DNA of 64,000 bases, taken from positions 10,850,001-10,914,000 of the forward strand of contig CM060733.1 of NCBI GenBank assembly GCA_030704615.1. The letters are read 5' to 3'. The position numbers and the translations under genes were made by a program. The stretch's first letter is position 1. Every line of letters starts with the position of its first letter. The notes below the pieces were generated by a model. The model had not been told where the DNA came from. It saw nothing but the letters and a program-made list of their open reading frames with translations, and did no database searches. The stretch is from Takakia lepidozioides. Its lineage: Eukaryota > Plantae > Bryophyta. Shown here in pieces: positions 1 to 29,383 of the stretch.

Positions 1-2542
1 GCATCATTTATGCTCCCACATTTGGCATACATAGCAACAAGGGCGCAGTCCAGAATGATATCTGGCTGAATTCCAGCTTTGATGAAGTCAGCATGGACCT
101 CTCTGCCCTTTTCCAGGGCCCCTAGGCTGGAGCATGCCTTCACAGCGCAAATGAAGGTAACCCGGTCAGGCATTACCCCTTCCTGTATCATTTGCTCATA
201 GGTTTCCAAAGCCTCCCTACCGCACCCATGCTGAGCATATCCTGTGATCATTGCATTCCACGAGACCACAGCTCGTTGAGCCATATTGTCAAACACTTTA
301 CGTGCATCCGTCATGCTCCTACATTTGGCATACATGTCTATTAAGGTATTCTCCAGGGTTACATTGGGCATAATTCTGGCTTTGATGATGTCAGCATGAA
401 CCTCTTTGGCCTTTTCCAGGGCTCCCAAGCTGACACATGCCTTCAGAGCACAGAGGAAGGTGACACGGTCAGGCATAAACCCTTCCCCTATCATTTTCTC
501 ATATGTATCCAGGGCCTTCCTACCATACCCATGTTTGGCATATCCTGCCATGAGTATAGTCCATGTAAACATATTCCGTTCAGGCATTTTGTCAAACACT
601 AGGCGTGCATCCACAACACTCCCACACTTTGCATACATATTGATGAGGGTGTTGTATAAAAAGAGGTTTGGCTTAAATCCGTTTTGGATTATGTGGGCAT
701 GCACCTGCTTTCCGTCTGCTAGGCCTTTCATCCTGATGCACTCCTGCAGGAGATAGATATAAGTATTGGAGTCTGCCGAAATGCCTTGTTCGTTCAAATT
801 CTGCAACACATGCCTCAGTTGTCCTGCCTTACACAGTGTCCTCACAATCCCACTAGTGCCAGAGGAGTTCTTGTGGACTTCCTCTCTTGGTCCTCTTTCA
901 AAATCGGTTGTCATGGTGGACGTCCCTGGTTCAAACAAATATGTTGCCACTGCTTCCAGTTGACCCTCTATCCATGCAGGTTTCTTGTAGCTATCAACCC
1001 ACAGTCCCTCGTTGGCACTCTTGTGCTTGAAATCTGGTCCTCTGGGACGGATCTGCAACCATAGTCCATCCTGCCTCCAATAACAAGATCCCATCCTATG
1101 CTGAATTGCTGGCAAAAGCGTGTGAGGGAGAGGCAGATAATGACATTTTACAAGAAAGTTTTTCAAAGCATCTTGTTGTCTGCCTCGGCTGTAACATAAC
1201 AGGCATCAACCTTTCTGCCTCAATTGTTCCTCCAGTGACTCTGGTTTGAAACACGTTCCTTCCAAACATTCTCCTTGTCTCTATTTTGGCTTTTAGAATA
1301 GTTGCCTGCAATCCCAATAGCAACATGTCAAAAACTCAGATCATCAGAGATACCCTACGAGCTACCTTACCAAGCCAATGATAAAAATGCAGTCTACTTG
1401 CTGTGTAAGCGAACCCCAGGTGGAAAAGGGGAAAAGAAAGAGGCATGAAAAAGGGGTAAACTCAATCACCTGATCCATCTGATAAAGAAACCCATGAAAT
1501 TCTTAACGTACTGTTACGACACTTACCCCTAGCTGCATCCAGTGTTTGCAATTCACCCTCCACCCAAGAAACATTGCTATCAATCCATAGAGTGTCATCT
1601 GCACTCTTGTGCTTGAAGTTTGGTCTTCTAGGATGAATCTGCACTTCGCACTCAATCCATTCAGCTATTATGGTCTCCACAACAAAAAAAAAAGTACAGA
1701 TTCTCCCTCACTGCAAGTAGCAACAATAACATTCCCTACTTTATATAGCAGCATCCACCCCTAACTACCAAATCCTAGCTCCTATGGCAAATCTGTGGCG
1801 AGACTTAGAAACAGTGTGAAAAGGATGGCTGGAAAACGTCGGCTCCGGAATACCCTATCGTACAAGCGATAGGGTATTGTTTGAAGGGCTGGCATTGGTA
1901 TCATATTGGGAGCACGCTATTGATATCAGCTGTGCTACATCATCCCTCCATCTATGACGCATGTGGGTTGCTGCAATACCAGTTGCACTTCGCCCAGTAC
2001 AGAAAGGGAGAGAAATGTTGTCACGTGCAACCTTGGAACCGGTTCGAGGTGAGACGGACTGGAATCCCCATAGCGTTCGGGTGCAGCCAAGGACAATTCG
2101 GTTACAGGGATTTGAGTGATGATCAGTGGCAGTGCCTTCGTACTAAATTAACTGATGATCCAGCACTTGCTCAACAAATGTAACAAATTTGAACGTGCTT
2201 GCACTGCCAGTCAAGGTTAGAGGAGGAGAGAGAATGTACTCACGAGACGTTGTACACTTCGAGAGAGAGAGAGGCCAGCATCATTAATTGGAGAGAAAGC
2301 TTATCTCTGCTTCTGCTCTAACATTAACAGACATTCACCTTAACCGCTGGATAGTTCCACCATTGGCGGGGGTTTCCATAACATTCGACCCAATTCTCCA
2401 CGACTGCATTTTGTGTTTTTCGATTTTTGCGTTTGTGGCCTCGTTGCTCCACCCCCCGCTCGTAAAGTTGGTCCTTTCCTGGTGGTCTCCAGCGCCGCCC
2501 AATTGGCTTGAAACCGGTTGCAGTCCAATTGGGAAGATGCAC
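1..2542 (-). CDS. PPR gene A: PLS-class pentatricopeptide protein with two N-terminal OSB-type PDF motifs; 3' end runs off the window, start uncertain, one in-frame TGA at 1222-1220
   Basis: Exons: ?-2339 (VENWVECYGNPRQWWNYPAVK|gtgaat), 1638-1527 (IHPRRPNFKHKSADDTLWIDSNVSWVEGEL), 1305-1211 (ENVWKERVSNQSHWRNN*GRK|gt), and 1052-<1 (IRPRGPDFKHKSANEGLWVDSYKKPAWIEGQL...MTTDFE...LLQECIRMKGLADGKQVHAH...MYAKCGSVVDAR). The PPR frame is absent from the ORF track because it has no stop inside the window. Confidence 0.8.
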
Positions 2543-4809
2543 ATGGATCCCATCAGGAGTGTACAGCCCACAATTTGAAGCTCTCAGCAGAGGGCCAGGG
2601 TTGTGAGGGCATCCCGAGAAGCCTTCAGCACATGTAGAGGGAGTCCAGCATGCTTAGCAAATGAGCTGCAATGGCTGCTCATTCTTCAGCACTTCGAATA
2701 CAACACACAGTCTGGAGACGGAGCAAATACTCTGGAACATTCTCCTAAGAAATGAGCCTTCAGTTCAGGCAGGGTTTGGTCGTTCGGTCTGTCCCACCTG
2801 GATTCTGTTATTGGAAATTTGGTTGTGGACTTGGATCGACAAGAAATGATCAGAACAAAAATTTACAGGCACCTCATTTGGGTTTCTATAAAGCTTTACA
2901 GAGTTGTATACGCCAATTCTTGTGAAATGTTCCTTTGAGGGTGAGTTCGAAGGATGCTACTCTTTCCGCGATGACGCACCCGTACTTTCACTGCAGTTGA
3001 ATTTGATTGTCTGATCGATGTGGGAGTGCAAAGACTTGAAACATAGAATTTGAATTTCATATGAGCTACAGTGTACACAGTGATTTGACCGTACAGATCT
3101 TCCCAGTTGTTGTGCTTCCAAAGCTTTTCACAAGTCCCCTGATATCTTGTGTAATAGAAGAACGGGTACTATGCTTGCTGCACCAGCAATCTTGTGCAAT
3201 CAGTAATAAGGATTTCGTCCTACAACTTGAGTGCTGCTTTTGGTATACCTGGTGACAGAAATCATAAATTTCCTTGCTACCTCACCTCCCAAGTCTGTAC
3301 AAGGTGTAGACAAGAGAGGCAAAAGCCATGTCAAACTGTTCTATAAACCTCTTCACAGAACATATTAGAAGCTGAGAAAGGCCGCAAAGGGTAAGAAGCA
3401 GCCATGGCCTACACACCATAACTTTGGGGCAAAAGAGACTGAAGGCACAGAAAAAACCCTCAAAAACTCTGGTCATGAACTCTCTCTCAGTCTTAGGTGG
3501 ACAAACAGCAGAATGACATGTCCACCAAGGCAGCCATCGCTACAAGCACCTTGCATTAAGGGAGACTGAACATGAAATAATCATTTACTGCATGAGAAAG
3601 TGTGTACATGTGGGAAAATATGCATACCCCATGTCAGGGGTTGCATTTCCGTGACAGTACTATCTGTTAAAATCTTTGAACTTTCCAGCTTACCTTAAAG
3701 CATAAAATTAAATGCAAAACCTTCGCTTGCATCTAAGCTCAGAAAAACAAAGAAATGCTCAAGGGAACAGGAAACATATTTTGGTGATCAAATAATGGGC
3801 CTAGACACCTGGACTTGCTGGTGCGGCTAATCTCCACTCCTTACGTCTTGGCCATCTGATAGTCATCCAATAACACACCCTCAACTGAGCGTGATGAAGG
3901 CAAGGCCTCATTCAGGGGCCACAGTTGACATACGTCACCCAAGCCTGACTGAGTCAAAGAGTCGGGCCGAAGCGCAGGGCGATAATACAACATACACCAT
4001 AAAAACTCTCGCAGTGTCATGATGATGACGCAGCCCATCTCAACTCATCGCAGCACCTGCATTTCCTAACAGCAGCTACTGCCATGCCTCTCCTACCACT
4101 ACAGCATAAGATGGGAGGCGAATAGTACTCAAATGACTGTAGCACATACAGCCTATAAATCGACATCAAACTCAGCCTAGAAAGGATACTTCCATAACCA
4201 AGTCACACTACCTTCAAGGAGGAAGCACCGAAGATAGGAAAGGGAACCTCTTAACAACTCACCTGCAATACAAAATATTCCATCGAAGTCAAGCAATAAG
4301 TCTTAGCTCTCTGGTTCCATAAAAAATAGAAAGCAACCAAGATTGCAAGATCAATGAGGATTCCTACTAAAGTAGGTGGCATAACTAAATACCATGAAGC
4401 CCACCTGAACAGGAATCTTGGAGCACAGAGGCAGCAGCTGTAGAAAGACAACACCAGCACAGCATGAACAACCATTGGACGTAGTATTAAACCAAACAAG
4501 ATCAACTGTGAGTAAGCTTGAGATTCACTTTGATAACTATGTTTGGCAGACCTCATCTGCAAGAATGCAAACATTCCTATACAAAGAACTTTATGTGACA
4601 CTCATGCGAACAAACAGACACAACAAGACACAATCGAGGCAAACCCACTGGAAAATGTCATGCAGACACCATGGCTGCTCCGAATTTGAGTGAAAGATTC
4701 AGGTTTTGTCGCGATTCTCATCCACCTTTTGCTCTCATCTCTTGGCAACAATGTAGTGTATGCCTCCTTCTGACCTCACGCCTTATTGCAGGTGAAGCAG
4801 TTGGGCTCC

Positions 4810-7800
4810 CTAGGACAGGAAGGTAGTCTTATCAAAAATAGGCAGGCCATGAATCCTGGCAGGGTCAACAACTGCTGCTACACCTCCCCGTGGTTGGTGA
4901 AGTCCCGCAAAACTGCGCCGGAGGGCAGCCGAGAATGGATATGCAGCAAGAGCCAACCGATAATACTCATCTAGGGCACTTTCCTCCCCAAGTTGAGCCA
5001 GTAACTGCCCTGCCTCCACCCAGTCCCCTTCAGGAGCTAGTGGACAAGCTTCCACTAAGGAGCTCAAGAGCAGTGAACTCGCCCACCCAGCAGCAGCGAA
5101 CCCCCTGATGCTGCTCAGATCACGTGCAAGGAGCCTACAAACAGATAACACTACATCCAAATTGCCAGGCATTACCTCCAGCATGCCCTCTAGGAATACA
5201 GCTACATCCTTGTGCAACCTTGGCTTCTCTGAAAGGAGGCTTTGCACCAGATTATTCATGACAGAGTAATCTAAAGGGGAGGGACCTAGGATAGAGTCGA
5301 TGAAAGAACGCACACTGCGCTTTGAGATGGTTTCTAGAAGCCTGTTTGAGAGTGGAGTCAACTTGCAGAGCATGCGAGTCTCTACCCAGCACCTGTCTAA
5401 AACATCAAGAACAAGACCTGCCCCACCACCTTCACCAAGGGCAATGCAAGCACCCATCTCTCTCCAGCAGTGCCCTACATCCTCTATACTGACTGCTGCT
5501 TTAACACTTCTTTCTACAGCATCTTGCGCTCTTCCCATCTCCCCATCAAGCATGTCAAAAAGTGCAAGGTTCAACCATGCAAAAACAACATCTTGACCTA
5601 CCTGCCCATAGCTGCCATCAGCATTTCTGTCAGTCATTGCTATGGCTTCTAGAGCCTTCCTAACCTCACTATTTCCCTCTCCCACCTGGCCAGAAGCCCA
5701 GCCATTAAGGATAGTTCCAGTACGGGCACACTGGGCTAGCACGCAGAGGGCCGCATTCTTGCCATTCCATTGCAGCACATGCGCAGCATACTGGCTCCAC
5801 AGCCGCTGTAGGCCAACCTGATGCGCCGGCCACTGGTGCAGGACCTGCTCAAAGACATCCACCCCTCGTTCCTTGCCCTCCATGCGTGCTGTGAGCAACA
5901 CCAATTCAACACAGTCCAGATGAACTTTGAGATATTCACGGGCCATGGCCAGAGCTTGATCGCACCCATGGTACAGTGCCAGGGACTGCACATGGTTAAC
6001 TGCAAAGGCTTGCACAGCCCGTTGTTCCGAAGTCTCTGCAAGGCAGCTCATGCCCGCACATATCAACTTGATGACGTACGCACCTGAGCTTGGTTGCAGC
6101 TGTTGGCGTCTGTCCCAGTCCAGGTTCAACGGTAACTGCTGCGTGCACCCTAGATGCTGCAAAAAGTCACGGGGCAGTTGACCAAATGCCATAGCATATG
6201 CACACCCCACCCACAGGATGCAGACATCATGGGGGGTTAAGCAGGCCAGCAGCGATCCACTACTAGCTCCTTGGTCAACCAGGTCATCCACCCAGGAAAG
6301 TAGGGCAGTGGTTTGATGTGCAACACATAGGCAGTCCAACATCTGCAGTGCAATGTCTAAGATGCAAGCACTCTGTTCGTCCCGATCATCTTTCTCCTGA
6401 GAAACAAGACCTTTCAGCCCCAACTTGTATGCCTCCAAGCGTGTCTCGAGCTGTGGTCGACTATTGATATATAAGAGCCACAGCTCATAGGAACCTTGAT
6501 TGAACACCACCTGCAAACCAGCAGCCACCCCAGCATATTCTCTGTAGACTCCTCACACAATTTTCCTTGCATTCCTACTGCTGGCTCTGACAGTACCCTT
6601 TCTATCTATGACCAAGGTGCTACACAAAGGAACCCTCATAAACCCTCCCCCTGCTCGATTTCCATAAACTTAGAAGCCAAAGGACTATCTGCTTTTGTTT
6701 TGTCTGCAAATTACCAACACACTTAAACAGCAAGGGCCAACAGAAAACAGAATCTTTGAGGTCACTTGTCAACTCAAAGCGCAATACAGCACACAACATG
6801 GATCCAGATTTCAACCATGCATCCTCTTTACAGCATGTAGAGAGGTACCGCATGATGGAACATGTCATCGGTGCCGATGCTGCTTTTACCCTGGTAGAAC
6901 AGGCATATGTAGACCACCCATAATGCCACTGCACTAGGATTGGCCTCCAATGCTCGTGAGAGCACAAACAGGGCCTGCAATCCCCCTCCCCGATAAACTC
7001 ACATGAGCACTCTTGCAAAGACTCCAAGTTGACCTTACTTCACAGAGAAAGAAACCTCACCCATTGTCTGTTTCCAAGACTTCATCCAAGAGCTCCAAAA
7101 CTTACATAATTGCGAGCATCAATGTCCTCACAACTGCAGTCAAATCCGATGCGTGTCAATGCTAGTTCCAATGACGCTTCCACATCCCCAGGCTCCTCAA
7201 GCACATGTTCCTGTTGCAAAGCCAAAGCCACAAGGAAAATCTCAGCCATTTTTTACCACAATTATAACTGTCCTACACACTACGGCCACCAATGTTTGAG
7301 CTTCCCACCGACTGCACATAACAACCGATAAGGTGCAATGACCCACAAAGTCATTTAATACATGATACAGCTATGAGACAGGTTTGCACTTCTAGGGCAA
7401 CCATGGGCAAGTACCTCAGCAAAAGCCTGTGATTCCCGAGCATCTTCCATGTAGCGGCAACTTCTCTCATCTGCTGCAATGGAAAGTTTGTCACCCTCTG
7501 ACATGGGTGTTGGCAAGCAGGGCATGTCTAGTCCCCATGGCCTGTGGATAGAAGGCGACAGTAGTGGGGAAGAAAGGGTGCCAACTTCCACATGGTGGCG
7601 TAAACAACACCTCACTCTACTCCATGGACTAGAGTTATATGGCTTGGTGAGATATGAACCAATCCGATAGATGGGCACACATATACCCTTGTTGTTCAAT
7701 GGCAACTTGTGTGAGAAAAGTTTGTTGCCACTGATGGTTGCAGCACCAGAATTCTGCGCTTCACTGATAAGTGCTGTAGTTACTGCATCAAAGGCTCTTG

Positions 7801-10800
7801 GAGACATATCATCATCCTCCACCTGTTTGTCAGAGTTAACATAACCAGACAGCTGAGACAGGAGGTCTCTGGGGCTAAGAGTGTAGTCAGCCACATGCTG
7901 CCAGGGACAGGTATCATTGTTGCACTTGCCGCGGTGTTCAAACTTGCAAAGTGGTTTAAAGGGATCAATGGTATGACTCCATGTCTTAGATGCAAAGCTG
8001 TAGTGCCAAGCTGTCTGAAATTGAGAGCACATCCTGTACGAGTGGAAGACACTAAGAGGGCTTTCATACCTGCCTAGAGGAATTGAAGACAGCTGGCCAT
8101 CTTCTTTCCCATCTGCTTCCTTAGAATTAAGGCAAAGAGTGTCATGAGTTCTGCCAAGAATGTAAGAGACACAGCTGAGTACCACAGAGAGCGCAGCTGA
8201 TGGCAACTGCTCATATTCACCGTGTAATTGCCGGTCCTCCTCTGTCATTGAGACCACACCAGTGATGCCATGTCCCACTTTATTGAAGAAAGTGTGAGAC
8301 TGTAACGCCTCTGCATGAATGGATCCATTTCCCCTCTCTTCCTGCTCATGCACCTCCTGCCCCCCTATATCCTCTTGAGCAGTTTGTGCTCCTATTTCAA
8401 TCGACGTGATAGTTGTACTCAAGCAGGCTGCCTTTTGCCCATCCTCTTCCATACTGTCTACATGGGGGGTTTCGCGGCTACCAAATGAAGAATTTTCATT
8501 TATCTGGAAGTCACACTGTTGGACAGCAGCCTCCAGAACAACTGGTCTCAATGAGTGTGAAAGCCTGAGAAGCTCCAAGTCTATGACCCCAGCCACTTTT
8601 TCTGCTCGAGCAGTATCCTTGTGATTCACAATCATCTGCTGGTTTCCATCATCATCTGCTAACGCTTTCAACCCAGTAATCTCTCGTATGCACTTCTGCC
8701 CAGTCATCACAGCTTCTTCATCTGGGGTCTCCTCTTCATCTGGGTCCTCATCTCCACCACTCTCACCTTGGCTGTCCTCCTTGGAAGATCTGGTTCCATC
8801 GTCCGCCATGCTGCATGTTGTAACAATCCTTGATGGCAGAACTTGCATTTTCACATGAAAGTCTGAATGGTTGTCCATAATCCTTTCCTGCGATTTATTA
8901 ACACATCCCACCTTGTTACTTGGTTGTCATATCAGTGAAGTTCTATTTTGGACCGAGACACAAAAGGCTCTGTTTCATTTTCATGGGTTTGTTCTTTCCA
9001 GACAACACAGCAGCCTAGACGCTTTTGCATCTGCATTACACTTGAAACTGACACAAATCAACACTGCAGCCTCACCTGATCTGCAGCATCAGCCAAGCTG
9101 TCTCCAATCCCACTTCCAAAACCAGTTGCTTGAGAGACGTGTTGTCTATGACAAGGAGCTGGATCAAGAACTGCAGGTTGCACCAAACAAGATTCAGTTC
9201 CCATGAGACCAACAAAAACTCAAAAGTATCTAGTGTAATTTCTCTGGCCACATAAGGCTACATTAGAAGGTTACCTCTTTCTTGTGCATAACCGTCCTCC
9301 ACATCATCCGCCCCATGATCACCGGAGACAGTTGCATCATTCGGTTCTGTGCAAAAAGAGTCGTGCTCATCTATAGTCACACCTTTGCGGTGACTTGTGG
9401 GGCTACCCTCATCCTCATGACCTTCCTCGTCCATCTGGTCATCCTGCCGGAGGCACACTGTCACAGATCCTCTTGAATCTGAACATACGTCTTCCCCATC
9501 AACACCTCCACTATTTGTACAGACCGCCTCCACTGATGTACTCCGGTTCCCCACAATTGCATAATAACCATCTACACCAGTAGCATCCGAGTTCACCATC
9601 ACATTCCCATCTTGTAGAGACGTGGCCACACTTGCCACCTCATGACCAGGCAGATGTTGTGCTTCCTCATATTGAACTGTTTCTGTGCTTGTCTTTGCCT
9701 CTGTCGTGTTAGTACCAATGGTCGCTTCAACACAGGGAAAACCCTCCGGCAATATGGGAGACAAATTGGCTGCAGACTGCAAGCTCTGAGGCGGGCAGGG
9801 AGATCTGTTGCTTTCACTAGTTTCTTCTTGTTGTTCCCTCTCTGTCAAAGCCACCTCAGAATCAATTGAAGGAAATTCCCCAATTGCATGTTGTCTCTGG
9901 CCAGAAATGTCCAAGCCTTGTGCCTTGATTTCTACAATATCGGCCCCACTTTTTCCCTCATCAGCATCCTTCTGCTCCCTCATGGTAACAACTGTTAGAA
10001 CCTCCATCCTCTCAACAGCAGCTTGCTCGACAAGGTTTTCAGGAACAGCTGCATTGCAACCATCAAGAGGATACAGCTGGCCCTCCTTCGATCCCAGAAC
10101 GTTATTCACAACAGCACGGTGATCTTGTAATGCAACTGTTGTAGAATAGTCAGTTTGACCATCCATGCTTGCAGCAGCAGCTGATGTGATCTCAGCAGGG
10201 CTTTTGTCTTTCCATGGTCCTTGCAGTGGAACCAAACCGACATTGTTATCTAGTATTGGCAAATCTCGCTGACCATCAATGGTGAGGACAGATTCTTGCT
10301 GCAACACATTTTTTGCAATATTCTCCATATTCTGGGTCACAAACGGATCAAGAGGATTGCTACAGACGTCTTGAACACCACCACTGGCAGTGCCCCTCTG
10401 CACTCCCAAATATTGGCCCCCAATAGGCTCCGACAAAGACTGAGGGAATGAGCTACCAGAGCTTGTTTCAAAAAAGACCGCAGCCATACTCATTTGCAAT
10501 CCCAAAGTTCGGTGATCGTGAGCTGGAGCAGCCATAGTAGCTAGTACCTCCTGTCCCATGAGCGACACCTGTCCATGGTTGCCGCTTATGTGTGCTGTCA
10601 ATCCTAAAGCCTGTCCTCCAGGTGGCTGGTGGTGGCTGGCCCACACAGCAGAAGGAAGGACTGCAGGTCTTTCAGAGACGTGTGGGCGAAGGTCATAGGG
10701 TGCTAAGTTGTTGCCATGCAGAGGAAACAATGGTGGATGCAGCCGTGCTGCCGCAGAAGACTGCTGAAATTCTGAAGCATGTATCCGTGCAGCCAATAGT

Positions 10801-13800
10801 TCACGATGTTGAAGAAGTCTGTCGCAGAGGTCATTGGACGAGTGAAGAGCTGTCAGGGCATCACGATACTGGCGGCGTGCATCCCGCTCACGCATTTCAC
10901 ACTGTCGCCTGCGCTGCTGTGCTTCCTCCAGGGCCCTGTCCACCACCTCCTCCTCCTGCTGCAACTGCAACACTGACAGAGGAACAGATCCTCTCCCAGG
11001 TTCCAAACTCCAAATGGAGCCATGCATGCCTGATGGCTCTGGTTGGCTTGCAGCTGTCTCAGATTGATGCACAGGTGGCCACCCTGCATGACCTGATGGG
11101 TTTGGGAAAGGGCGCATCACATCCACATTGTCCTGTCCTGCAGCATTTGTTGAATAATTTGGACTTATTTGGACACATTCCGTGCGCCTCAGTGAAGGAG
11201 ATGGCACTGGCCGAGCCCATTTCAAGTCTTTCATGCTGTCAGGCAAGGAAGATGTTAGACTAGTACATGCTACTGAACTTGGAACCAAAACTGCCAATGC
11301 TGAGTGGGTCTCTTGTGTGACTGACTGAACCATGTTGGCAGTAGAAAGCTGCACTGCTGCACACTGGGTGACAGGAGGGCATTGCAGAGCATCTGCTGCA
11401 AGAAAAACTGCCTCTTGAAGACTTGAAGATGACTTTCCACCTTCCAGACTTAATGGCTGTCCATCAGCAACAAATCGTGCCTTTGGAAAGACTCTAAACT
11501 GGCTATCATCCACGAGCTGTGGCCCAGCATTGGGGCTACTTGTACACTTATTCCCCCCTGGAATGCATATGTCTGTATGACTCAAATCACAAATTGAATC
11601 CTTGTCAGCCACTCTTGTGATTGGTTCTTGCTCTGCAGAGGTCCTTAAACAGCACGTGGAGCTTACAGTACATGCCAAGTCTTGTGAGCCAGAAGATAAA
11701 ATCAGTTGAGTTGATGGATGGTCACCCTCAGCAGCTGCGATTACAGACAATCTAATAGAAGGGGTTGGGTGTAGCACTGAGGGCAATTGGGCGGTAGTTT
11801 CTGGTAGACCCTTTGAAGAGGATGGGAAATGCACAACACCTGAGCTCAGACCAGTGGAAAAATCTCTGTTTGAGAAATTAGCTACTTTGGCTCCGAAAAT
11901 AGACCTGCCTCCTGCAGGGGTGGCAAACTGTTGATCTGCTTGGTGTTGAGGAGCTAAGCCCGCATGCAGTGTGGCTGACATACGAGGCTTCTTGAAGGCT
12001 GCAGTACCCATGCGATCTGTAGACTGACCTTCTGCTGCCTTGCGCTTTACACCCACATGATTATCTGCCTGAGCTGAGGACATTTCCTCACAAAACATGC
12101 TCTTGCTACCAACGTTATTACCCTCCTCCCCATGCAGTTGCCCAGTAAAGTTCTGCAGTTTAGGCAGTATGGGATGTGGAGGCGTGCACTCTGGTCTGTG
12201 AACGCTGTTCCCTCCTAGAACCTGTACATCTGAAGCTACCCTTTTCACAGCCACAACTATCCCTGAATTTGGTGGAGGTGCTCCATCATTGCCCTCAATC
12301 TCTTGAGCATGTGCAAGACTTGTTAAATCAGGCTCAAGATGTCTAGAACCCAATTGTACAGGCTCAGACTGTCTAACAATGTTTCCCTGGCCAGCCCTTC
12401 CAGGACCTAAAGCACTCATCCTAGCAGCATTTCCTGCTTTCAATTGCCCACTCCCCACTTTGCCAACACCCATATCCCTCCCAAGTGATGAGCGTGAACC
12501 CACTGCAGCTACCTTGCGCTGGCGTCTCTCATTCAATTCACTCTCCTTCGCTGCTATTTGTTGGCGCAGACTGTCCAGATCTGCCCCAGCCTGCATTGCC
12601 CCGCGCTTGGCCATTGCTGGAGAGTGTCCAGTTGAGAATCCCTTGCTATTGGTGAATGTCTTTCCCTTGTTGCGCTCTAAGTCAGCAATCTGCTTCTTCA
12701 TGCGATCAATATCTCCTTTAAGGTCTGCTGGACTCTGGATAACTGCACCTAAACCTGGCTGGCCACCTGCAGCAACAACTTTGTCGAAGCCACTGTTGCT
12801 AGATTGGCCCTGGGCTGAGCTGCACTGCTGCTGATCCCCTTCACTGTCACTGTCACTGTCAAACTTGATCACGAACTTTTCTCCATGTTCAGAACCTGTG
12901 GATGGATGGGAGGAGGGGAGAAGTGGAATGCGCAGGCTGGCAAGGAACGCCTCTGCTTCTTTGCGAACACCACCCACTGGCACAGCTGCAGCCAGTGGTG
13001 GCTGTGATCCTGCAGAGATCAGCATGTTATATGGATCTTGCCTTCATATTACCACCAAGAGATGATGGTGGATGCACCTGTACATTGGTTGAACTTCAAG
13101 TCACATGACTAACAAACCAGCACAGTTCATATCACCTAGGGACGTACAGACCATTGTGAAGGAGGGCAAGGAAGTGAGTCAGCACACCTGTCAATGCTGC
13201 ACCAGCACCTAACACAGGAGACGCAACTGTGGATGCAGCCACCGGGGGGGCTCTGGTGGTTACAGAGGAGACTACAGCTGCTTCTTTGCTTGTACTCTTT
13301 TTACCATGTGCAAATGATTGCCCAAGAAGAGACACACTCTCACGCTGTGCAGGCACAGCTGCTGTGGCTTCAGACAGCCTCTGGGTCCCATTTTGACAGC
13401 CTTGGAATGACTTTCTGTTCCTTGTTAGAGCTTGCACTGATGTCAATTCTTGACTTACCGAGCTTACATCTGCAGGTCTGGGCTGCATAATTGCACCCTC
13501 AAAGACATTAGCTAGCACTGTGAATGATTTGGCCACACTGCAACTATTTATAACCTGACCACACAAGCAATGAATTACTGGATGAAGACCAAAAAAATCT
13601 CAAGAGAATGAATGTACTCGAGCCATTCCCTGCCAACGTTAGCTTGCCAAAGCCTTACAGCCATTGGCCCCACAGAGAACTAACCCTCCTGGAGCCTTTC
13701 ACGGGGTTTGCACCCACTAAGGTTTAGCTTCTCCCCACAGCTCAGCTGCAGGAATAACTTGTTTCCCCACAACTGCCATCAACTTGCCAGGCCAGTTGCA

Positions 13801-15785
13801 GGGTTATTAATCTTAGTTTTACAGCCCGGCGTATACCACAGAATTGACATGCATGGGAAATGTGCAGCTTCTGCCTGTCACTCTGGGCTCTGGGCAGGGC
13901 AGAGACCATCAAGAGAGAAGCTACTTACCTAAACAACTTCCTCACTTAATGAACAGTACCAAATGTGTGCTTACCTGAACTTGTGACCTTGAATCTGCTG
14001 CTAAACCTGCGTCTGTCCCTGCACACAAAACCACCAACCTCATTGGACTAATGCCTTCTATCTATCATTCAGTTGAGAAAGGCATGTTTGTAGGTATGGG
14101 CGCATTTGATTTTCACATACTGTGCCAAGATGCCTTGAATATTTACAGCCTTCAAAAATTTCTCTCTGACCCTTACACGACTTGTGTTTCCTTTTCCCAT
14201 TGACATATTACTCCATGCACAATCAGGGCACTGGCATATAATAGAGACCCACACAAAAGGGTACAGCATGCCATAACAAATCCAGGTAACATTCTGAGCA
14301 ACTGCACCCAAATAAACATGTGCACACATAGATACGAGATGTCACATGCCACTCATTCACAGAAGATGTTGAGCAGATAACAGCCATATTGTGGCAATAT
14401 TGACAAGCATCACAGTCAAAAACTTTGCCAATTGGCAGAGTTTATTTGTCTTTAACAGAATACGACTGCCACAGACAGGCTGCTCAACTTACCCAGCTCT
14501 GTTCCCTGAAGAGCAGACAAAGGAGGAGCCTGTGCACTAAACACATTGAGAAGGCGTGACTTGTTAACTATGGAAACATGAGTTGCTGGTGATAATAGTT
14601 CTGTCTTGAAAATATTGGAAGTGACATAACTGTGTGCCCCCTCCTTTACACCAGCTTGACATTGCACTCCAAGGCTCGGAGCACCTATCTTTGGAACAGA
14701 TGATGGAGGCGTGCCCTAATTGCAACCAACAGAGAGCATGCAAGCAATATCATCAGGGAAAGTCCATAACTCTTCAGAAATCATCCTTACTGCCATCATG
14801 GAGACCATTGCCACCGAGGCATCACTCAACAGCACCCAAACATACAAACCCTAACTAGGGCTTAGTAAGCTGGTTAAGAGAGGATATCATGTGCAAAACA
14901 AGAATCATAGCATTTCGACATGCTTTACCTCAAGTCCACAACTAACAAACCTTACCTACCACAAGTCTAACTGGGGAAACTTAAGCTACACCCTACTTTC
15001 ATACAGTATATGTATGTAGCAGGCCCTTTGGCCTTGGTGGCAACAACGTGTCGGATCAAGCTGAAAAATGAGGCTCGCAACTTAGCCAGAGGGCAGTGCG
15101 ACCCAATGTGGGTGCACAGGGAGAACTCAAACAGCTCTGCATGTGACTGCTATGGCTGCAATACAAGACTGTCATGCCGCTGTGATCAACTTTCATAGAA
15201 AGAGCCATCACACACAGAAAACCTACTGCGAGAGTTCATAATCCACATCTTCAATCCATCACCTCCAGGAATGTCTAAAGTTCAAAGTATCCACATAAGG
15301 ATTCGTCCTTGAGTATTAAGACGAAACAGACATGTATGGAACAAGAAGCATCCATCATGACAATCGCATATACATCGTAGCAAATAGATAATGCGGAGAC
15401 CCGTATATTCCAAAACAGGACGAGGATCCAACCACACAGAAGAAGTAGAGAGCCATCTTCCAACACACTAAGACTCTCGACACAGCAAACAATGCCGAAA
15501 AACACGATCCTGTTCATGAGGAGAAGAAAACGAAGACACGAACAGTGTAGACTAAAGGGCTCATCACATAGACATATGCAAACGAAAAGCGAGACATGGA
15601 GGAGCAACGGCAGGAAGGGACAAGTACAACACCTCCACATCCTCCTCTGAAGAGAGCTCGCCTTCTTCTTTATCTTCTTTCTCTTTATCTTGCTGATGAG
15701 GGGCTGGTTGTGGTCTCCGCGACACGGACGGCATCGATGCAAACGCAAGAGCCCTCAGCACATCTATTGACCTTGAATCCCCCAT
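4810..15785 (-). CDS. Multi-exon zinc finger C3H1 domain protein (ZFC3H1/Red1-like nuclear RNA surveillance factor, plant type)
   Basis: N-terminal KEEGELSSEED (ATG 15785) and large low-complexity/coiled-coil exons (13025-9275). YESPLSVFHSYR...WSHTIDPFKPLCKFEHRGKCNNDTCPWQH zf-C3H1 lies in ORF 7355-8911. A helical HAT/TPR-like C-terminal exon (6515-4810) starts NQGSYELWLLYINSR. Internal exon borders are approximate. Confidence 0.8.
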
Positions 15786-17046: not shown

Positions 17047-18760
17047 ATTGTTGTCAGGCCATTTAGGCATCTGTAGAATGCATGTTGTGCACCTGTTATG
17101 GCTTTAATGACTTGTAACATTGCAGATTGGGAATGTGTTTGCTCTTCGCAGGCGCCTTTTGAGTATTGAGCGAGGATATGCGCAGGTATTCATTTGTGCA
17201 TTTACTTTCTGTCTGGTTGTTTCTGTCTGCATGCCTGGTTGGTGTGATGTTATTTCACCACTTTCAAACATCTTGTTCCACTTAAGCTATTCTCAGAGAC
17301 CATAATGGATGCCATTGAGTTAGGTACCCAACTTTGTTTGTCTTCTATGATACATTTGTTGTCATCTCTCTTAGGGTTTGGTTAATTAGTTGTCAGACCT
17401 CTCCGGCACTTTTCTAGCTATTATCTCTGAATACAGAAATGAGGACCTCAAACAAGCGAGTTTAAGTATTCGTTGAATTTGGTTAGTAAATCGGTCAGAT
17501 CAAAGTTCCCCTACACTGGGTTGTTTTAATGCATCTGTTGCTCAACTATGACATTTTCAGGTCGTCTTAGAGTGCTTAACTGACAGAGGGTCATGAATAG
17601 AAGTGCAAGTTTGCAATGTGTAAGAAAAGCTAGTAGTGGGGTGACTCAAACAGGGTATATAAAGTGAAGGCTAGCTGCAGTATTTTCTGAAGAAAGTGTC
17701 TGGAATATCGTTGAGTCAGGCTTGGGGCCTGGCAGTGGTGAGGGGCTGTATTTAAAGTTGGTAAATCAGGTTGAAGTTGACAAGAGAAGCAAGTGGTAGG
17801 AGGTAAGTCTGCGGGATCACTTCAGCAAGCATGGAGGTCAGAGTAGCAGTAGTTTCCTTAAGTACAATGGCTGAAATAGGGGTGAGGCTTTTGGGCCTGG
17901 TGGATGGTGGAGATGGGATGCAGCTAACAAAATTGCTAGATCTATTTGTTTTGGGAATGGAAGGGTAACAGTACAAGACATGGTGGAGACCACGGCAGCT
18001 CTGCTCAGTATGAGAAATGGGGCTCCGGCAAGGGGGAAGGTGAAAGGTATGCACGTGCAAGAGAGGCAAGCTCAGCTCGAGAAGCACAGCGCCAGTGGCA
18101 AGTGCACATAGAGGAGCAGCAGCGAAGGGTAGGGTAGTGGTTCCTTTGTTCCTTTGCTCAAGTTACTTCCATGAACTTTCCCCTTTCAACTTGTGTGAGG
18201 AGGTTATTGAGAACTGCAGTTCCACCATCCACAAGCCAGATACATGTATCATATGAGCTGGTATTGCCTTTGCATACAAGGGTAATGGAGTGGGCACCAG
18301 TGGGGCTTTGTGGCAGGAACGCATACGTCGAATGCAGGAGGCCTTTGCAAGGGAGAAGGGATCGTACACCAAAACGTATGAGGCATGGCATGAGCGTCAT
18401 GGTGACAAGTGGGATTGGAGACGAGAGGGTGACCGATGGGAATGGAAAGGCGAGGAGCAGCGACAGCAGGCAGAAAGGGAGAAGGAGAGGAAAAGAAGTG
18501 AAGAGAAAAAGCATGTTTCCAGTTATGAGTTACTGAAACGTGCCAGACTTGGACATCACTATGCTGTGTTAGGCCTTGATGCAACCCGTCGACAACCATA
18601 TTCAGACACTGAAATCAAGGCAGCCTTCCGCTCCAAAGCTTTGGAGTATCACCCAGACCAAAATCAAGTCAATAAGCAGGCTGCTGAGGTCAAGTTCAGG
18701 CAACTTCTGGAGTCTTATCACATGCTTAGGGCCCAATCGAGTTCAAATAGGACCACTTGA
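16342..18760 (+). CDS. DnaJ-domain protein with an N-terminal hydrophobic segment and a C-terminal J domain (multi-exon)
   Basis: The last exon (from about 18317) encodes ERIRRMQEAF...HHYAVLGLD...EIKAAFRSKALEYHPDQN...KFRQLLESY with the HPD motif. Upstream exons at about 16342-16440 (FWIFMFMGAAA), 17172-17205 and 17972-18128 are bounded by AG/GT; these are less certain. Confidence 0.8.
16968..17045. repeat. Compound (CA)n-(CT)n microsatellite in an intron of the DnaJ gene
   Basis: Direct reading: cacaca...caactctctc...tctcacacaca. Confidence 0.95.
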
Positions 18761-20861
18761 ACACCTTGTATTCCCTTCTTTTTCGCTGGGGCAAGCAGGG
18801 TGTATGAGTGATGGTACACGAAGGTACTAGAGAGGCTCACCGGTTCTGAAGTTTAACCTCAATGAGAGTTGAGAGATCCAATCACAAGGCATGGGCTCCC
18901 TCTCTTCCGCAAAGGTTCTCTCTAACACCAAGGGTCTGTTTCTATGATTGGAGAGCCAGTTTGTGAATTAGGGAAATGCAGCCCTGGTATGGAACATCAA
19001 CACCGTAAGATTTGAACTTCAGTACCAGATATAGAGATGCGGCTGGTCAGCCAAAAGTACGGAAACCTTCTTTGAGGTATTCACCCTCCCCCTGCCCTTC
19101 GGAGAATGCAGACAGATGCAGACTATTACATCTGATCACAAGGGTATCAGATCACTGCCTTGCAATTCAAACAGGTGGATGAACTTCACCTCCACGACCT
19201 TCACCTCAAAGGGAACATTATACTAAGTGTCCGTTGTCACTTGTTCTATCTCTTGTTAGCAAGTTGCACAATTGGAATTAGAAGTCAGTGAATGTGCGAT
19301 GGAATTGATTTGCTCATGCTCAATGCACGGTCAGTAGATCCTTGAAGCATACCTTCGGATGCCAGGATTGATCCAAGTTGAGTCATCTCCTCATTTCTCT
19401 ATTGATCTCCCATACCATCCTCTGTTCCTGCAGTATCTGAATTTTGTCCCATTTTCTCCTTGCTCTACTAGGAACTGTGAGTGCACCACTACATCATAAT
19501 GGAGAGTCGGCCCACCGGGAGGCCGGCACAGGTGAAGCAAAGTCCGTGCTAGTACTTTCCTACGCAACAATCGCTTTGTCAAGCCCAGATTTGATGCAAT
19601 GTTAGCAAGCTTAGCTTCTAAAATAATACACATGTCGCAGATAGTGTAAGAATTGTGTACAGAGCCTCCGTGTGTAACCAATTCCACAATTGTGGCTCCA
19701 CCTTCCCAGGTAGCATTGCAGATGCAGTTGCCACCTTCATAGAGCTTATTAAAAATATGTTTGCCAGGCTACCCCTTCAAGGCGCTGGAGGACTATGTGG
19801 TTTATGCAAAGGAATACACCATGGCTGTGGATGCTTCATAGTGTTGCAAACACCCTGATATTACCATGTATGTAGTACACTTCTTGTTGTACAGAGTTGT
19901 TGTCCAAAGCAGCCTGTTATAAGATCCAGGGCTCCATGACAGCACACTGGTGGAATCTCAGCAGTGCGGGTGCTATTGTTAGTGTCGTCAGAAATTGTTT
20001 AGGTGAAGATGCACATAAAGAGGATGACTTTTTGGAGTGATCATATCAGATGATGACCTTTATTCAGTGGTTATCTCTATCATGCATACAGCAAGTTGAA
20101 CCTCACAGAGGGCTTAAGCAGTGTTGTTCTTGTATTACATTTTTCACATGGCAGCCGGGTCTAAACATTATTGTCTTGAAAGTTTTTTATACTCATAGCT
20201 GGTCCTAAGTATCTCAAAACAAAAATGTGTTTGATACCAGTCTGCTCTAAATACTGGATCAAAATCTCAAAATGAACTACCTAGTATCAAGTATCAACCT
20301 GGACTTAATATGTTTCCAGGGCTGGAAATGGGGCATCTTATAGATTCTATCCCAGTTTTTAACTTCATAAAACAAAAATTCACCATGAGATTTTCCCACC
20401 ATTGTTAGATGAACGGCCAGAGGATAGGCCCATAGGCTCTTCTACTATATATATTGGACAGAGCTCGGAGGGAGGAACGATAGCTTGTCTAAAGGTATGA
20501 AAGCCTCGTGATGCAAGACTCTCTCGTTCAGTCCATGGCTGCTCAGCTGCCCCATGGCTGGTTTCATAGCAATATCCAAGATCGCCAGACGTCAGACATA
20601 AGAACAAGGGAGGTCCTTTGGATTGAATGTTGGTCGAACCCTCCTTGGGTGAGAGAAGAGCTATCTGTGAAGATACAAGATGGAACAGAGTCTAGTGATT
20701 GTTCTGATGTGGATTTACGCCATGCTGCTCCAGTCCGAGAAGACGACGGGTATTTTTCTGAAAATGGAATTGACGCAGTTTTCCTAAATGTATAGGACTG
20801 CAATTGTTTTGTGATGCTGTTTTGTGGCAAGGACCCTGTCATTATGGAGTGATCTTACAGG

Positions 20862-23075
20862 ATGGCAGGTTTGAATCAATTACAAATGTTTGTTGACAGG
20901 GGTGGCACCTCCATCACCACCACTGCTTTTAAAACAATAGAGAGGGTCAACAAGGACTCTTCTGGCACTTGTAAGAATGTGAGAATGTTGTCTAAGGCAG
21001 GACAACTGAAAGAGGCATTGCACATTTTGAAGCAAATGGGCATTCAGGTGGACTCCACTACCTATGTCTGTCTCTTGCAGGAGTGCATCAACATAAAAGG
21101 CCTAGCAGAGGGAAAGCAGGTCCATGCCCACATAATCCAAAGTGGATTTAAGCCAAGTAAGTTTATACTCAACACCCTCGTCAACATGTATGCCAAATGC
21201 GGGAGCATCGTGGATGCACGCCGAATGTTTGACAAAATTCGTGAACGAGATATTTTCACGTGGACGATGATGATAGCAGGATATGCCAAGCATGGGTTTG
21301 GTAGGGAGGCTTGCAATCTCTACGAGGTAATGCAACAGGAAGGGGTCACACCCAACAGGGTCACGTTCATTTGTGTTCTCAATGCCTGTGCCAGCCTTGG
21401 AGCCCTGAAGAAAGGCAAGGAGGTCCATGCTGATATCATTAAAGGTGGAATTTCACCAGATATTGTTATAGAGAATACCCTAGTCCACATGTATTCCAAG
21501 TGTGGAAGCCTGAAGGATGCACGTCAAGTGTTAGATAATATGGCTACACGGAATGTGGTCTCTTGGAGTGCAATGATTGCAGGGTATGCTCAGCATGGTT
21601 GTGGTAGGGAGGCTTTTATGATCTACGAGCAAATGCAAAGGGAAGGGGTGATGCCCAACAGGGTTACTTTCATTTGCATCCTGGATGCATGTGTAAGCCT
21701 AGGAGCTCTGGAAAAGGGCAAAAATGTCCATGCAGACATCATCAAAGCTGAGATTTTGCCAGATATAAATTTGGAGACTGCCCTTTCTGACATGTATGCC
21801 AAATGCAGCAGCATGAAAGATGCGCTTAGAGTCTTTGACAATATGGCTAATCGAAATGTTGTATCATGGAGCGTCATGATTGCAGGATATACTCAACATG
21901 GCTACAGTAGGGAAGCTTTCAAGATCTATGAGCAAATGATTCAGGAAGGGGTGAGGCCAGACAAGGTTACATTCAACTGTGTTCTCAATGCCTGTGCCAG
22001 TCTAGGAGCCCTGGAAAAGGGCAAAGAGGTCCATGCTGATATGAGCAAAAGAAAAGTTGCACCGGATATCATTCTGGAGAATACCCTTGTTGACATGTAT
22101 TGCAAATGTGGCAGTGTAAAGGATGCGCGTCAAGTGTTTGACAATATGCTTCACCGGGATGTGGTGTCATGGAATGCCATGATTGCTGGGTATGCTCAGC
22201 AAGGGTGTAGTAGGGAGGCCCTCCAATTATCTGAGCAAATGCAACGGGAAGGCTTTAAGCTAGATGGTATTACCTTTGTGTCTGTTCTGTCTGCATGTAG
22301 CCATGTGGGCCTAGTGGATGAAGGTCATCACTACTTTGATTCCATGAGCCGATATCATGGTCTCACTCCTATGGTGGAGCATTTTGGCTGCATGGTGGAC
22401 CTCCTTGGCCGTGCAGGGCGATTGGATGAGGCGGAGGACTTCATTGTAAAAATGCCAGTGGAACCAGGTGCTTCGGTGTGGGGGGGGCCGTGCAGGATTC
22501 ATGGCGATGTGAAGATAGCAGAACGTGCAGCAAAATGTCTTATCAAGAGTGACCCACAGCATGCTGGGAGTTACGTGCTGCTATCTAACATCTATGCCGC
22601 GGCTGGCAGGTGGGATGAGAAAGCCAAGGTGAGAAAATTGATGGAGGAGAGAGGCGCCAGAAAGGAGGCAGGGCACAGCTGCATTGAGGTGGACAACCGG
22701 GTGCATATGTTTGTTGTAGAAGACAAACTGCACCCACAGATTGAGGAAATTCATGCTGAGCTGAAGAGATTGTCTTGGCAGATGAAGGAGGCTGGGTACG
22801 TGCCTGATACACGCTTTGTATTGCATGATGTAGAGGAAGAGCAAAAGGAGCTTTCTCTTTGCCACCACAGTGAGAAGCTGGCCATTGCTTTTGGCCTCAT
22901 CAAAACACCCCCAAGTACTCCTATCCATGTCATAAAAAACCTTCGGGTGTGTGGTGACTGCCACACTGCCAGCAAGTTCATCTCAAAGATTGTTGGGCGA
23001 GAAATTGTTTTACGGGACGCCAGCCGCTTCCACCACTTCCAAGATGGGGTTTGTTCTTGTGGGGATTACTGGTGA
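20862..23075 (+). CDS. PPR gene B: PLS-E1-E2-DYW protein (4 S-P units); upstream PDF-motif exon 20570-20749 is frameshifted
   Basis: 737-aa ORF with a 101-aa PLS period, HSEKLA, CGDCH and CSCGDYW. The upstream exon reads YPRSPDVRHK, then after a 2-bp deletion TREVLWIECWSNPPWVREEL. Confidence 0.93.
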
Positions 23076-24459
23076 AACAAGATAATATGATACTTCAATC
23101 AGTAAATCTGGCTGAAGGGACCCAAGCATAGCTGTGTCGCGACATATTCTCCACCTGTATGTTCATGAAGTGGGGACAACGTGGACAAGACACCAATCAT
23201 CCTGTTTGGGCAGTTACAGCATGGGCTCACCATAGAGGAGATCTGTTGATTGGTGCTAACCCCTCCACAAGTTTGCACGGTACACCCTCGAACTCTTCGC
23301 TTGAACTGTTGTGGAACTTTCCTGGATTTGATAACAGCCTCCCAGGGCAGACTCAGAAATCCAGGAAAGTCCTGGGGTAAGAATTTTGTCATAAAGAATT
23401 GCTCAAAACCTTTCCCCTGCCCATGCCTGGGTTATGAAAATGCTGGACTGTAATCCAATATCCTTCTTCCCCGAGCCACATAATCCTTCTGCTTGGGGAG
23501 GTCAGTATAGTTACAAAATGAATTTTTGAGTAGTGCTTACAGGAGCCATAATGCTGTCCAGGAACTTGAGCGCTGGTGTACCACATGTGAATTGCTAGTG
23601 GTACCACTTGTTGGAATGACGGATCTTGGTCCAAACCCATCTTTATTAAACCTCAAGATGGAGCCTATTCCCAACATTGAAATGATTGTGGAAATGAGGT
23701 GCAGACTGCACAGAGGATGGGCATGCGATCGTATGTGGTGGCCTTGCTGTCATGGCTGAATTTCCTACTTTGTGAGCTCCTTGCATACATGCTACCAAGT
23801 CTCTAGAGAGAGTTTCGATCTTGCCTTTCACTGATCAATTTGACAGATATGTGCAGGCAGCAAAGGAGGTGGGGTCCTATATGGTTGAACGAAGATAACT
23901 TCTATTAGTTTGTTGCTGCTTTACCAAAAGAGGCAAGTACTCTTTAGTCCTCTGTGAACTGACAGTTAGAGTGAGAAGGCATGTGATGCTACACAGCCCC
24001 ATTTACTGCTGAGTGCAAGTGGCAAGGCCAAGATAATCTATCTGCCAATGCCTGGTTGTCTCAACAGACACTCAGGTTTCTTAGAGCTCTCTCCAATCCA
24101 CCACCAAAGATCTTGACATAAGTTTTGGACCACTGAACTCCCTTCTTGGTTCAACCCTCAACATTGTTTTGAGTTGTCATGATTCCCTTAATAATATTGG
24201 ACAACTCTTTCAAACAAGCTCATCTTGCCGGTCGGTGTGCTCCAACAACTGTGTTGCTAGCTGCTGCCTTCACTTGACCATCCACCCACAAAGGTTTCTT
24301 GTACATAGCTATGAATCCATAGCTGCTTGTTGGCACTAATGTGCTTCAAATCTGTTCCTCCAGACTGATGGTTGTGCCTCGATTGTCCCATAGTTGACTG
24401 AAGTTCGAAAAACTCTCCACACACCTAGAGCTGCACATCCGAAACTTCTGAAAACACCT

Positions 24460-24600
24460 AACGAAGAACCTCAGATAATGTGGTGACTGCCACCAAGTCA
24501 ATCGCAAAGACTGTTGGTTGAACTAGTGTGATATGGGGTCGCTTCACCACTTCCAAGATGGGCTTTGGTCTTGTAGGGACAAGATATAGAGACAAGAGAC
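24460..24600 (+). pseudogene. Degenerate remnant of a DYW-domain 3' end
   Basis: aagaacctcagataatgtggtgactgccac...cgcttcaccacttccaagatgggctttggtcttgtagggac matches KNLR.CGDCH...[10 protein letters not shown] of the neighbouring genes, with stops and indels. Confidence 0.85.
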
Positions 24601-28200: not shown

Positions 28201-29383
28201 GTTTGGTAAGGAGGCTTTTGGATTCTACGCGCAAATGCAATTGGAAGGGGTGACACCCGACAGGGTCACATTTATTTGTGTTCTCAATGCATGTGCTACC
28301 CTGGGAGCCCTGGAAAAGGGAAAAGAAGTCCATGCTGATATCATCAAAGATGGAATTGCCTCATACACCAAGTTGGAGAATACACTTGTTGACATGTATG
28401 CCAAATGTGGGAGCATAAAGGATGCACGTCAGGTATTTGATGAAATGGCTGAACGAGATGTGGTCTCGTGGACTGCAATGATCGCAGGATATGCCCAGCA
28501 TGGGCTAGGGACAGAGGCTCTGCAATTGTTTGAAAAAATGCAACAAGAAAACTTGAAGCCGAATGGTATCACCTTTATATCTCTTCTATCTGCTTGTAGC
28601 CATGTGGGCCTGGTGGAAGAAGGTCGCCATTACTTTGACTCCATGAGTTTGGATTGTGGTCTCACTCCTACACTCGAACATTTTGGCTGCATGGTGGACA
28701 TTCTTGGCCGTGCAGGGCGATTGAAAGAGGCAGAGGACTTTATTGATACAATGCCTATTGAACCAGATGCTTCTGTGTGGGGGGCCTTGCTTGGTGCCTG
28801 CAGAATTCATGGCAATGTGAAGCTAGCAGAACGTTCGGCAAAAAGTGTTCTCAAGTGTGAACCGCAGCACGCTGCAGCTTATGTGCTGCTATCAAATATT
28901 TATGCTGTGGCTGGCAGGTGGGAGAGTAGAGCAAAGGTGAGGAAAATAATGGAGGAAAGAGGTGTCAGAAAGGATTCAGGCCGCAGCTGCATTGAGATTG
29001 ACAATGAGGTCCATACATTCTTTGCAGAAGACAAATTGCATCCACAAATTGGGGAAATCCACGCTGAGCTAAGGAGCTTGTCTGGGCGGATGAAAGATGC
29101 CGGTTACGTGCCTGATACGCGCTTTGTGTTGCATGAATTGGAGGAAGATCAAAAGGAACTTTCTCTGTGCTACCACAGTGAGAGGCTGGCCATTGCTTAT
29201 GGGCTCATCAGCGCGCCCCCTGGGACACCAATCCGTGTCATTAAGAACCTTCGGGTGTGTGGTGACTGCCACAGTGCCACCAAGTTCATCTCAAAGATTG
29301 TCGGGCGAGCAGTTGTTGTACGGGATGCAAACCGCTTTCATCACTTCCAAGATGGGGTTTGCTCTTGTGGGGATTACTGGTGA
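25289..29383 (+). CDS. PPR gene C: leader + PDF motif + PLS-E1-E2-DYW protein (5 S-P units), 4 exons, frame fully open
   Basis: Exons 25289-25511 (MAKCCAALLSAQLES...VELKWAS, phase 1), 26127-26167 ([14 protein letters not shown]|gtgagt), 26428-26609 (KTPRSPDFRHMLTKEVPWIE...VKAEL, phase 2) and 26836-29383 (IAGFREAQVLVGH...HSERLA...CGDCH...CSCGDYW). Splice phases join without stops. Confidence 0.9.

Follow-up and report, generated by a model that had tools for sequence, protein, structure and literature searches.

The closest described systems to the genes considered here are the PLS-class PPR editing factors and the OSB proteins, which carry the PDF motif. A 2026 survey of editing factors lists PPR, MORF, RRM and zinc-finger fusions, does not mention PDF or OSB, and counts 2,016 PPR genes in Takakia lepidozioides (PMC13386178). 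Conversely, a 2026 phylogeny of OSB proteins retained only proteins with an OB-fold plus PDF, and does not mention PPR (PMC13393729). The PDF motif alone binds single-stranded DNA (PMC6963530, PMC4166229), although for the OSB-type motif this has been shown only with Arabidopsis OSB1 (PMC6963530). We found no paper on PDF-PPR fusions, in a searchable literature that is incomplete. The complete motif consists of W...NP..WWDNR..K (front half) followed by.NP..PDFKHK..LW..P.W..L (rear half). A reading of PDF as peptide deformylase was rejected by reasoning, since none of the peptide deformylase motifs is present.

The window, that is, the whole stretch of 64,000 nucleotides of T. lepidozioides DNA that was analysed, is land-plant DNA and carries five genes for PLS-class PPR proteins, of which A lies at the left edge and B to E further right (Table 1). 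It also holds a zinc-finger gene and J-domain, beta-galactosidase-like and retroelement reverse transcriptase genes, the last three identified by reading the sequence. Gene A can be read only up to window position 1, any E/DYW region falling outside the window. Its layout is that of the PDF-PPR family described below, with PDF exons 5' of a PLS array and in the same register; this array is recognized by Pfam PPR matches (PPR_2, E 3.9e-41) and repeating triplets from 914 to 3. PDF modules are present twice in tandem, a phase-0 intron dividing each of them, and the ancestor of gene A would have joined a targeting peptide, both modules and the PPR array.

Table 1. Coordinates of features in the window (window positions; X1 and X2, DNA runs; X5 and X6, RNA runs)
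Feature	Position	Strand	Remarks
Gene A, ATG, N-terminal linker and start of PLS-class PPR array	1-914	-	ATG at 914; continues past window edge
Gene A, PDF copy 2 rear half and linker	915-1052	-	open, intron-free, in frame with PPR array
Gene A, ancestral phase-0 intron in PDF copy 2	1053-1210	-	158 nt, GT..AG; retained in RNA contig
Gene A, PDF copy 2 degenerate front-half exon	1211-1305	-	DNA runs X1, X2 and RNA run X5
Gene A, phase-1 intron	1306-1526	-	221 nt; spliced
Gene A, PDF copy 1 rear-half exon	1527-1638	-	PNFKHK...LWIDS...WVEGEL; 40 bits; in RNA contig
Gene A, phase-0 intron inside PDF copy 1	1639-2338	-	700 nt; spliced
Gene A, first exon seen in RNA	2339-2740	-	ATG 2740 in PDF frame; in-frame TAA 2656-2654; degenerate copy-1 front half (NP..WW); RNA contig X5 record 19 spans 2738-2339, 0 differences
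RNA contigs of runs X5 and X6	3570-4259		between zinc-finger gene and gene A
Zinc-finger gene, multi-exon	4810-15750	-	zf-C3H1 domain (PF10650), like ZFC3H1/Red1; RNA contigs at 3' end near 4649-4800
J-domain protein, small	18290-18760	+	C-terminal J-domain, HPD motif
Gene B	20570-23075	+	rear-half PDF exon frameshifted; PLS-E-DYW ORF 20862-23075
Decayed DYW-domain remnant	24430-24580	+	KNLR, CGDCH, HHFQDG
Gene C	26128-29383	+	front-half exon shortened, ends 26167; rear-half exon 26428-26609; phase-2 intron; PLS-E-DYW exon
Gene C, PPR part	26861-29383	+
Gene D	about 30446-33670	-	good PDF halves; linker stop; frameshifted PPR part; pseudogene
Gene E	35815-39647	-	predicted 956-aa PDF-PLS-E-DYW open frame (local translation, Pfam, HSE/CxxC/DYW motifs); exons 39647-39548, 39072-38993, 38711-38536, 38329-35815, GT-AG-bounded, phases 1/0/2
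Retroelement pieces	44241-45700		related to the reverse transcriptase ORF
Beta-galactosidase-like gene	about 47300-53900
Reverse transcriptase ORF, non-LTR retroelement	54436-56039	+

The original prediction was that a PDFKHK stretch runs without intron or stop into the PPR array of gene A. The frame is indeed open for 350 stop-free codons from 1052 to 3 on the minus strand, which translate in order into 46 codons (IRPRGPDFKHK...KKPAWIEGQL...PGTST), MTTDFE at ATG 914 and then PPR motifs; as noted at the time, it is absent from the list of open reading frames, because the ORF leaves the window at its edge. A frameshift or assembly error between 1052 and 914 would have undone the observation, and DNA and RNA contigs both cover this region with 0 differences and 0 gaps. 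The DNA contigs over the junction stem from two runs of one sample (X1, 817-995 and 972-4800; X2, 817-996 and 968-4800) and the RNA contigs (X5, 817-997 and 968-1304) from a different sample and a different study, and over 817-1304 all are identical to the window. An open run of 46 codons is by itself weak evidence, since it is seen in 8% of shuffles; the rear-half motif is above chance, at 48.0 bits (iE 1e-13) in a six-frame scan of the window with a profile built from public proteins only.

The stretch begins immediately past an AG acceptor (1054-1053), carries the pattern PDF(K/R)HK..LW..P.W..L and, judged by its sequence, is best read as the rear half, and only the rear half, of an OSB-type PDF motif. 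It had been called the most canonical half-motif in the window, which is correct for the literal hexamer PDFKHK but not by score, as the rear half of gene E is equal or better (54.8 bits versus 53.8 for gene A against the public-protein profile, and 53.2 versus 48.0 in the window scan). A Pfam scan of the 46 codons matched no family, and a word search with the half-motif gave two candidates, neither of them significant. The KKPAWIE residues were also considered as a displaced DYW PG-box, an idea rejected by reasoning, since they align with the P.W of the PDF motif.

The same stretch had been put forward as evidence, independent of splicing, for a fusion. This it is for a PDF-PPR fusion in the ancestry of gene A, but it does not prove a fusion protein today, and the claim of such a protein is overstated because the front half requires splicing, has degenerated and contains a TGA, because a TAA lies upstream, and because an intron is retained in the RNA. 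The front halves of gene A score only 6.5 bits (copy 1) and 2.8 bits (copy 2), versus 47-49 bits in genes D and E. In copy 2, five of the ten conserved positions are altered, the conserved Arg of WWDNR is replaced by an in-frame TGA (1222-1220), and no joined in-frame W...NP..WWDNR..K can be read. The first exon ends at its 3' boundary in a phase-0 GT donor, and the frame from its ATG 2740 ends at the TAA after 28 codons, leaving no in-frame N-terminal organellar targeting peptide. No OB-fold or SSB-like domain was recognized by eye upstream in gene A, in three frames over 4900-2300 or in the RNA contig.

RNA run X5 contains one 850-nt contig that is placed at 2738-2339, 1638-1526 and 1304-968 with 0 differences. 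As two GT-AG introns have been removed from it, the contig is RNA and gene A is transcribed. Both stops, TAA and TGA, are present in this contig, and the 158-nt intron of copy 2 is kept; its acceptor is purine-rich, but that of the spliced intron in copy 1 is equally so. Splicing of 1210-1053 would not help in any case, since in local translation the TGA closes the frame three codons ahead of the junction. Nothing supports U-to-C editing as a rescue of the stops, as the RNA contig carries the genomic letters. With two stops and a retained intron, gene A has no single open frame that runs through an entire PDF domain into the PPR array, and its X5 transcript encodes no intact PDF-PPR protein. 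The product is at most a half-motif plus PPR from ATG 1094, which lies within the retained intron and in frame with the array, or a PPR-only protein from ATG 914. Twenty ATGs precede the former in the 725-nt leader seen, and 24 precede the latter. This 5' structure rests on one RNA run, and Logan contigs omit rare isoforms and give no start site; there may also be a shorter transcript that starts near 1300-1100.

We put the probability at roughly 0.7 that gene A is a copy eroded at its 5' end, from which no complete PDF domain is made. It would belong to an old seedless-plant family in which two 3' exons of an OSB-type gene stand before a PLS-class PPR(-E-DYW) editing factor, the borrowed part comprising the phase-1 intron, front half, phase-0 intron and rear half of the PDF module. 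Gene A would later have gained nonsense codons in exon 1 and in the copy-2 front half and have retained the in-module intron, with the rear half staying in frame only because it and the PPR array lie together on the last exon. It is probably poorly translated or becoming a pseudogene, since both remaining starts lie behind many upstream ATGs, with no obvious targeting peptide.

Structure predictions bear on whether half a motif could work. With matched alignments of 63 sequences, AlphaFold confidently predicts the complete motif as an alpha-beta-beta-beta-alpha fold (pLDDT 93.8, pTM 0.77), to which the front half contributes the first helix and the first strand. The rear half of gene A alone reaches a pLDDT of 76.5 and a pTM of 0.38, although short peptides score lower anyway. 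The comparison supports, but does not prove, the idea that the rear half has no confident fold without the front half. PDF rear halves occur in 91 public PPR proteins, and in 89 of them the front half precedes the last rear half, the two exceptions being a degenerate fern protein and an annotated Diphasiastrum isoform (P0272) that begins within the motif. Fold searches with the complete motif gave no Foldseek match at E<=0.001 and a best VIA Z of 3.1, which does not imply that the fold is novel. A PDB sequence search gave no match, and an ESM Atlas search no usable match.

It is unlikely that gene A is instead a working editor with a new N-terminus, for which the retained intron supplies ATG 1094. 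Its rear half would then have been selected as a targeting peptide or as a reduced nucleic-acid contact, perhaps completed in trans by a second protein that bears a PDF. Such a start is in frame and within the RNA contig, the PPR frame that follows is open for at least 304 codons, and isoform P0272 likewise starts within the motif. The rear half keeps P-D-F-K-H-K, L-W and P-W, scores like intact copies, and is basic, with 7 R/K in the first 40 residues. Its good state next to the worn front half could reflect continued selection, but the conservation contrast between the halves of copy 2 is not significant (Fisher p 0.40), and the 20 ATGs in the leader and the half-motif without a confident predicted fold also argue against this interpretation. 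In a wider proposal, seedless plants would have a large class of editors with an OSB-derived PDF, which we consider likely, and the module of gene A would have been cut to its rear half and reused through the ATG of the retained intron, which is doubtful to the same degree as the new N-terminus.

That gene A is an ordinary PPR protein made from ATG 914 of a shorter transcript, with the whole PDF region as 5' UTR, appears improbable. This ATG has a good context (ACCATGA) and is common to gene E, and the RNA contig depth is 17.6 over 817-997 versus 9.2 upstream, a measure that cannot rank gene parts. However, the equivalent ATG is internal in the intact gene E, and the 40 residues after the start contain four acidic ones, which judged by composition only is unlike a targeting peptide. 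The last alternative, that the stops or the contiguity are artefacts of the assembly or of the individual and that gene A encodes an intact PDF-PDF-PPR protein, is largely refuted, since no base differs between the two DNA runs, both from one sample, and the RNA run, from another sample and study, and nothing was found in its favor except that Logan contigs can hide rare alleles.

Phase-2 GT-AG introns are predicted between the PDF exon and the PPR exon of B, C, D and E. Gene A does lack this intron, but the different intron state attributed to it is not peculiar to it: when public proteins are mapped exactly, with splicing, to the genes that encode them, the junction intron is present in both Ceratodon genes and in Diphasiastrum and absent in Calypogeia fissa and Sphagnum compactum. 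The proposed alignment of gene A with B to E shows a match to their last exon from TSTMTT on, with a linker about 25-30 codons shorter in gene A. The simplest account of the missing intron would be 3'-end intron loss or a short in-frame deletion, favored because the start of the last exon of gene A still aligns with B to E. The intron-free junction probably arose independently of that in Sphagnum and Calypogeia, as the linker of gene A aligns with those of B to E, unlike the short linker of the other two genera. The idea that the TYLFEP codons are an exonized intron end was dropped, since they align with the coding start of the last exon in B and D.

The other two introns are more uniform. All five mapped PDF-PPR genes and an OSB gene of Riccia have a phase-1 intron ahead of the front half and a phase-0 intron that separates the two halves, and gene A has both (1526-1306 and 1210-1053). 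The position of the phase-0 intron within the motif is common to gene A, Ceratodon, Calypogeia, Sphagnum, Diphasiastrum and the Riccia OSB gene. The latter (Riccia fluitans, L013, 1745-2447) carries its PDF motif with the phase-1 and phase-0 introns as in the PDF-PPR genes. These shared introns speak for recruitment of the last exons of an OSB gene by PDF-PPR genes as the probable direction of transfer.

Each of the four paralogs has E, E+ and DYW domains, in which the HSE and CxxC motifs are present. Gene E, in its predicted model, holds a complete PDF and the PPR array in one open frame, and we regard it as the best intact PDF-PPR example in the window; two in-frame acceptors lie 24 nt apart, at 38330 and 38306. 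No front-half exon was found for gene B, and decay of the PDF module is the rule in this PPR cluster. Relative to C, D and E, gene B also misses four residues in its last S motif before the E domain, and the DYW-domain remnant lies about 1.4 kb beyond its end. The RNA at 3570-4259 is perhaps a long 3' UTR or an unrecognized 5' exon of gene A. Further right in the window, the retroelement ORF and fragments adjoin and sit within the beta-galactosidase-like gene.

The PDF-PPR fusion family is real. The 91 public proteins come from a liverwort, mosses, a lycophyte and a fern, and annotated examples include Ceratodon purpureus M758_3G008300 and M758_7G001800 (both with DYW), Calypogeia fissa P0027, proteins of Sphagnum species including Sphagnum compactum CAM6033764, Diphasiastrum complanatum O6H91_21G032400 and Adiantum GOP47_0023879. 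One search returned 72 PDF-PPR clusters from Diphasiastrum complanatum, with one to three motifs each, and an intron-free Logan contig carries three complete PDF motifs in a single 1,371-aa PDF-PPR frame. Metagenome contigs show the same split PDF exons ahead of decayed PPR genes. When 1.84 billion representatives were searched with a profile of the window's five rear halves, 441 proteins matched at E<=0.001; the best 150 of these include many SSB-plus-PDF proteins and 8 PDF-PPR proteins. Searches used exons singly, and exons were joined only for local frame reading. An exact look-up of five window proteins found none in the searched protein collection, and the motif was absent from Ginkgo and conifer PPR proteins among 120 relatives of gene E, a small sample. 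The profile search also returned P0121, P0125, P0126 and P0129, in which 8-13 PDF motifs form an array and PPR is not matched. Among them, P0125 shows an unusual variant with long spacers and is possibly from a eukaryote other than a plant.

In Takakia itself, the summed contig depth over 961-1120 is about 3,000 times that of the single-copy flanks in the DNA runs, which is not a copy number but indicates many paralogs of this motif type in the genome. Depth there is high in the RNA runs too, 33 contigs over this segment carry one common substitution at 998, and loose contig ends represent paralogs in which the motif is followed by an Ala-rich helix. Together, these observations suggest that the PDF-PPR subfamily is very large and is expressed.

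In mosses, liverworts, lycophytes and ferns, PLS-DYW editors often carry an unannotated nucleic-acid-binding domain. Pfam has no model for it, and it escapes gene finders because its coding sequence is divided between two small exons. We think it rather more probable than the opposite that the PDF has a function in these editors. By analogy with OSB biochemistry, its most likely role in intact members would be that of a sequence-unspecific single-strand grip that aids PPR loading on organellar RNA, or of a nucleoid tether, and it may take the supporting part that falls to MORF proteins in seed plants. Gene A itself adds little new; it illustrates the loss of a module, which starts in the front half and involves stops and a retained intron, and it teaches that an in-frame half-motif is no proof of a fusion protein. 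For study of the fusion, gene E is the preferred copy.

Compared with known systems, genes A to E resemble the PLS-class PPR-E-DYW C-to-U editing factors in their P, L and S repeats (Pfam PPR, PPR_2), but differ from them by the additional N-terminal PDF exons. With the OSB proteins (OSB1-4 and pTAC9) they share the same PDF motif of about 50 residues and, in the case of the Riccia OSB gene, phase-1 and phase-0 introns at identical places. In OSB proteins, however, the motif is C-terminal, whereas here it is N-terminal and followed by PPR, is incomplete in gene A, and has no OB-fold or SSB domain that could be seen by eye upstream of it. They also resemble the unnamed PDF-PPR proteins of seedless plants, which have the same domain order, one to three PDF copies, and introns around and inside the motif, but whose public models have complete motifs, unlike the degenerate and stopped front halves of gene A. 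At the level of the family, these are known parts in a new combination, of which the gene A locus is a worn example.
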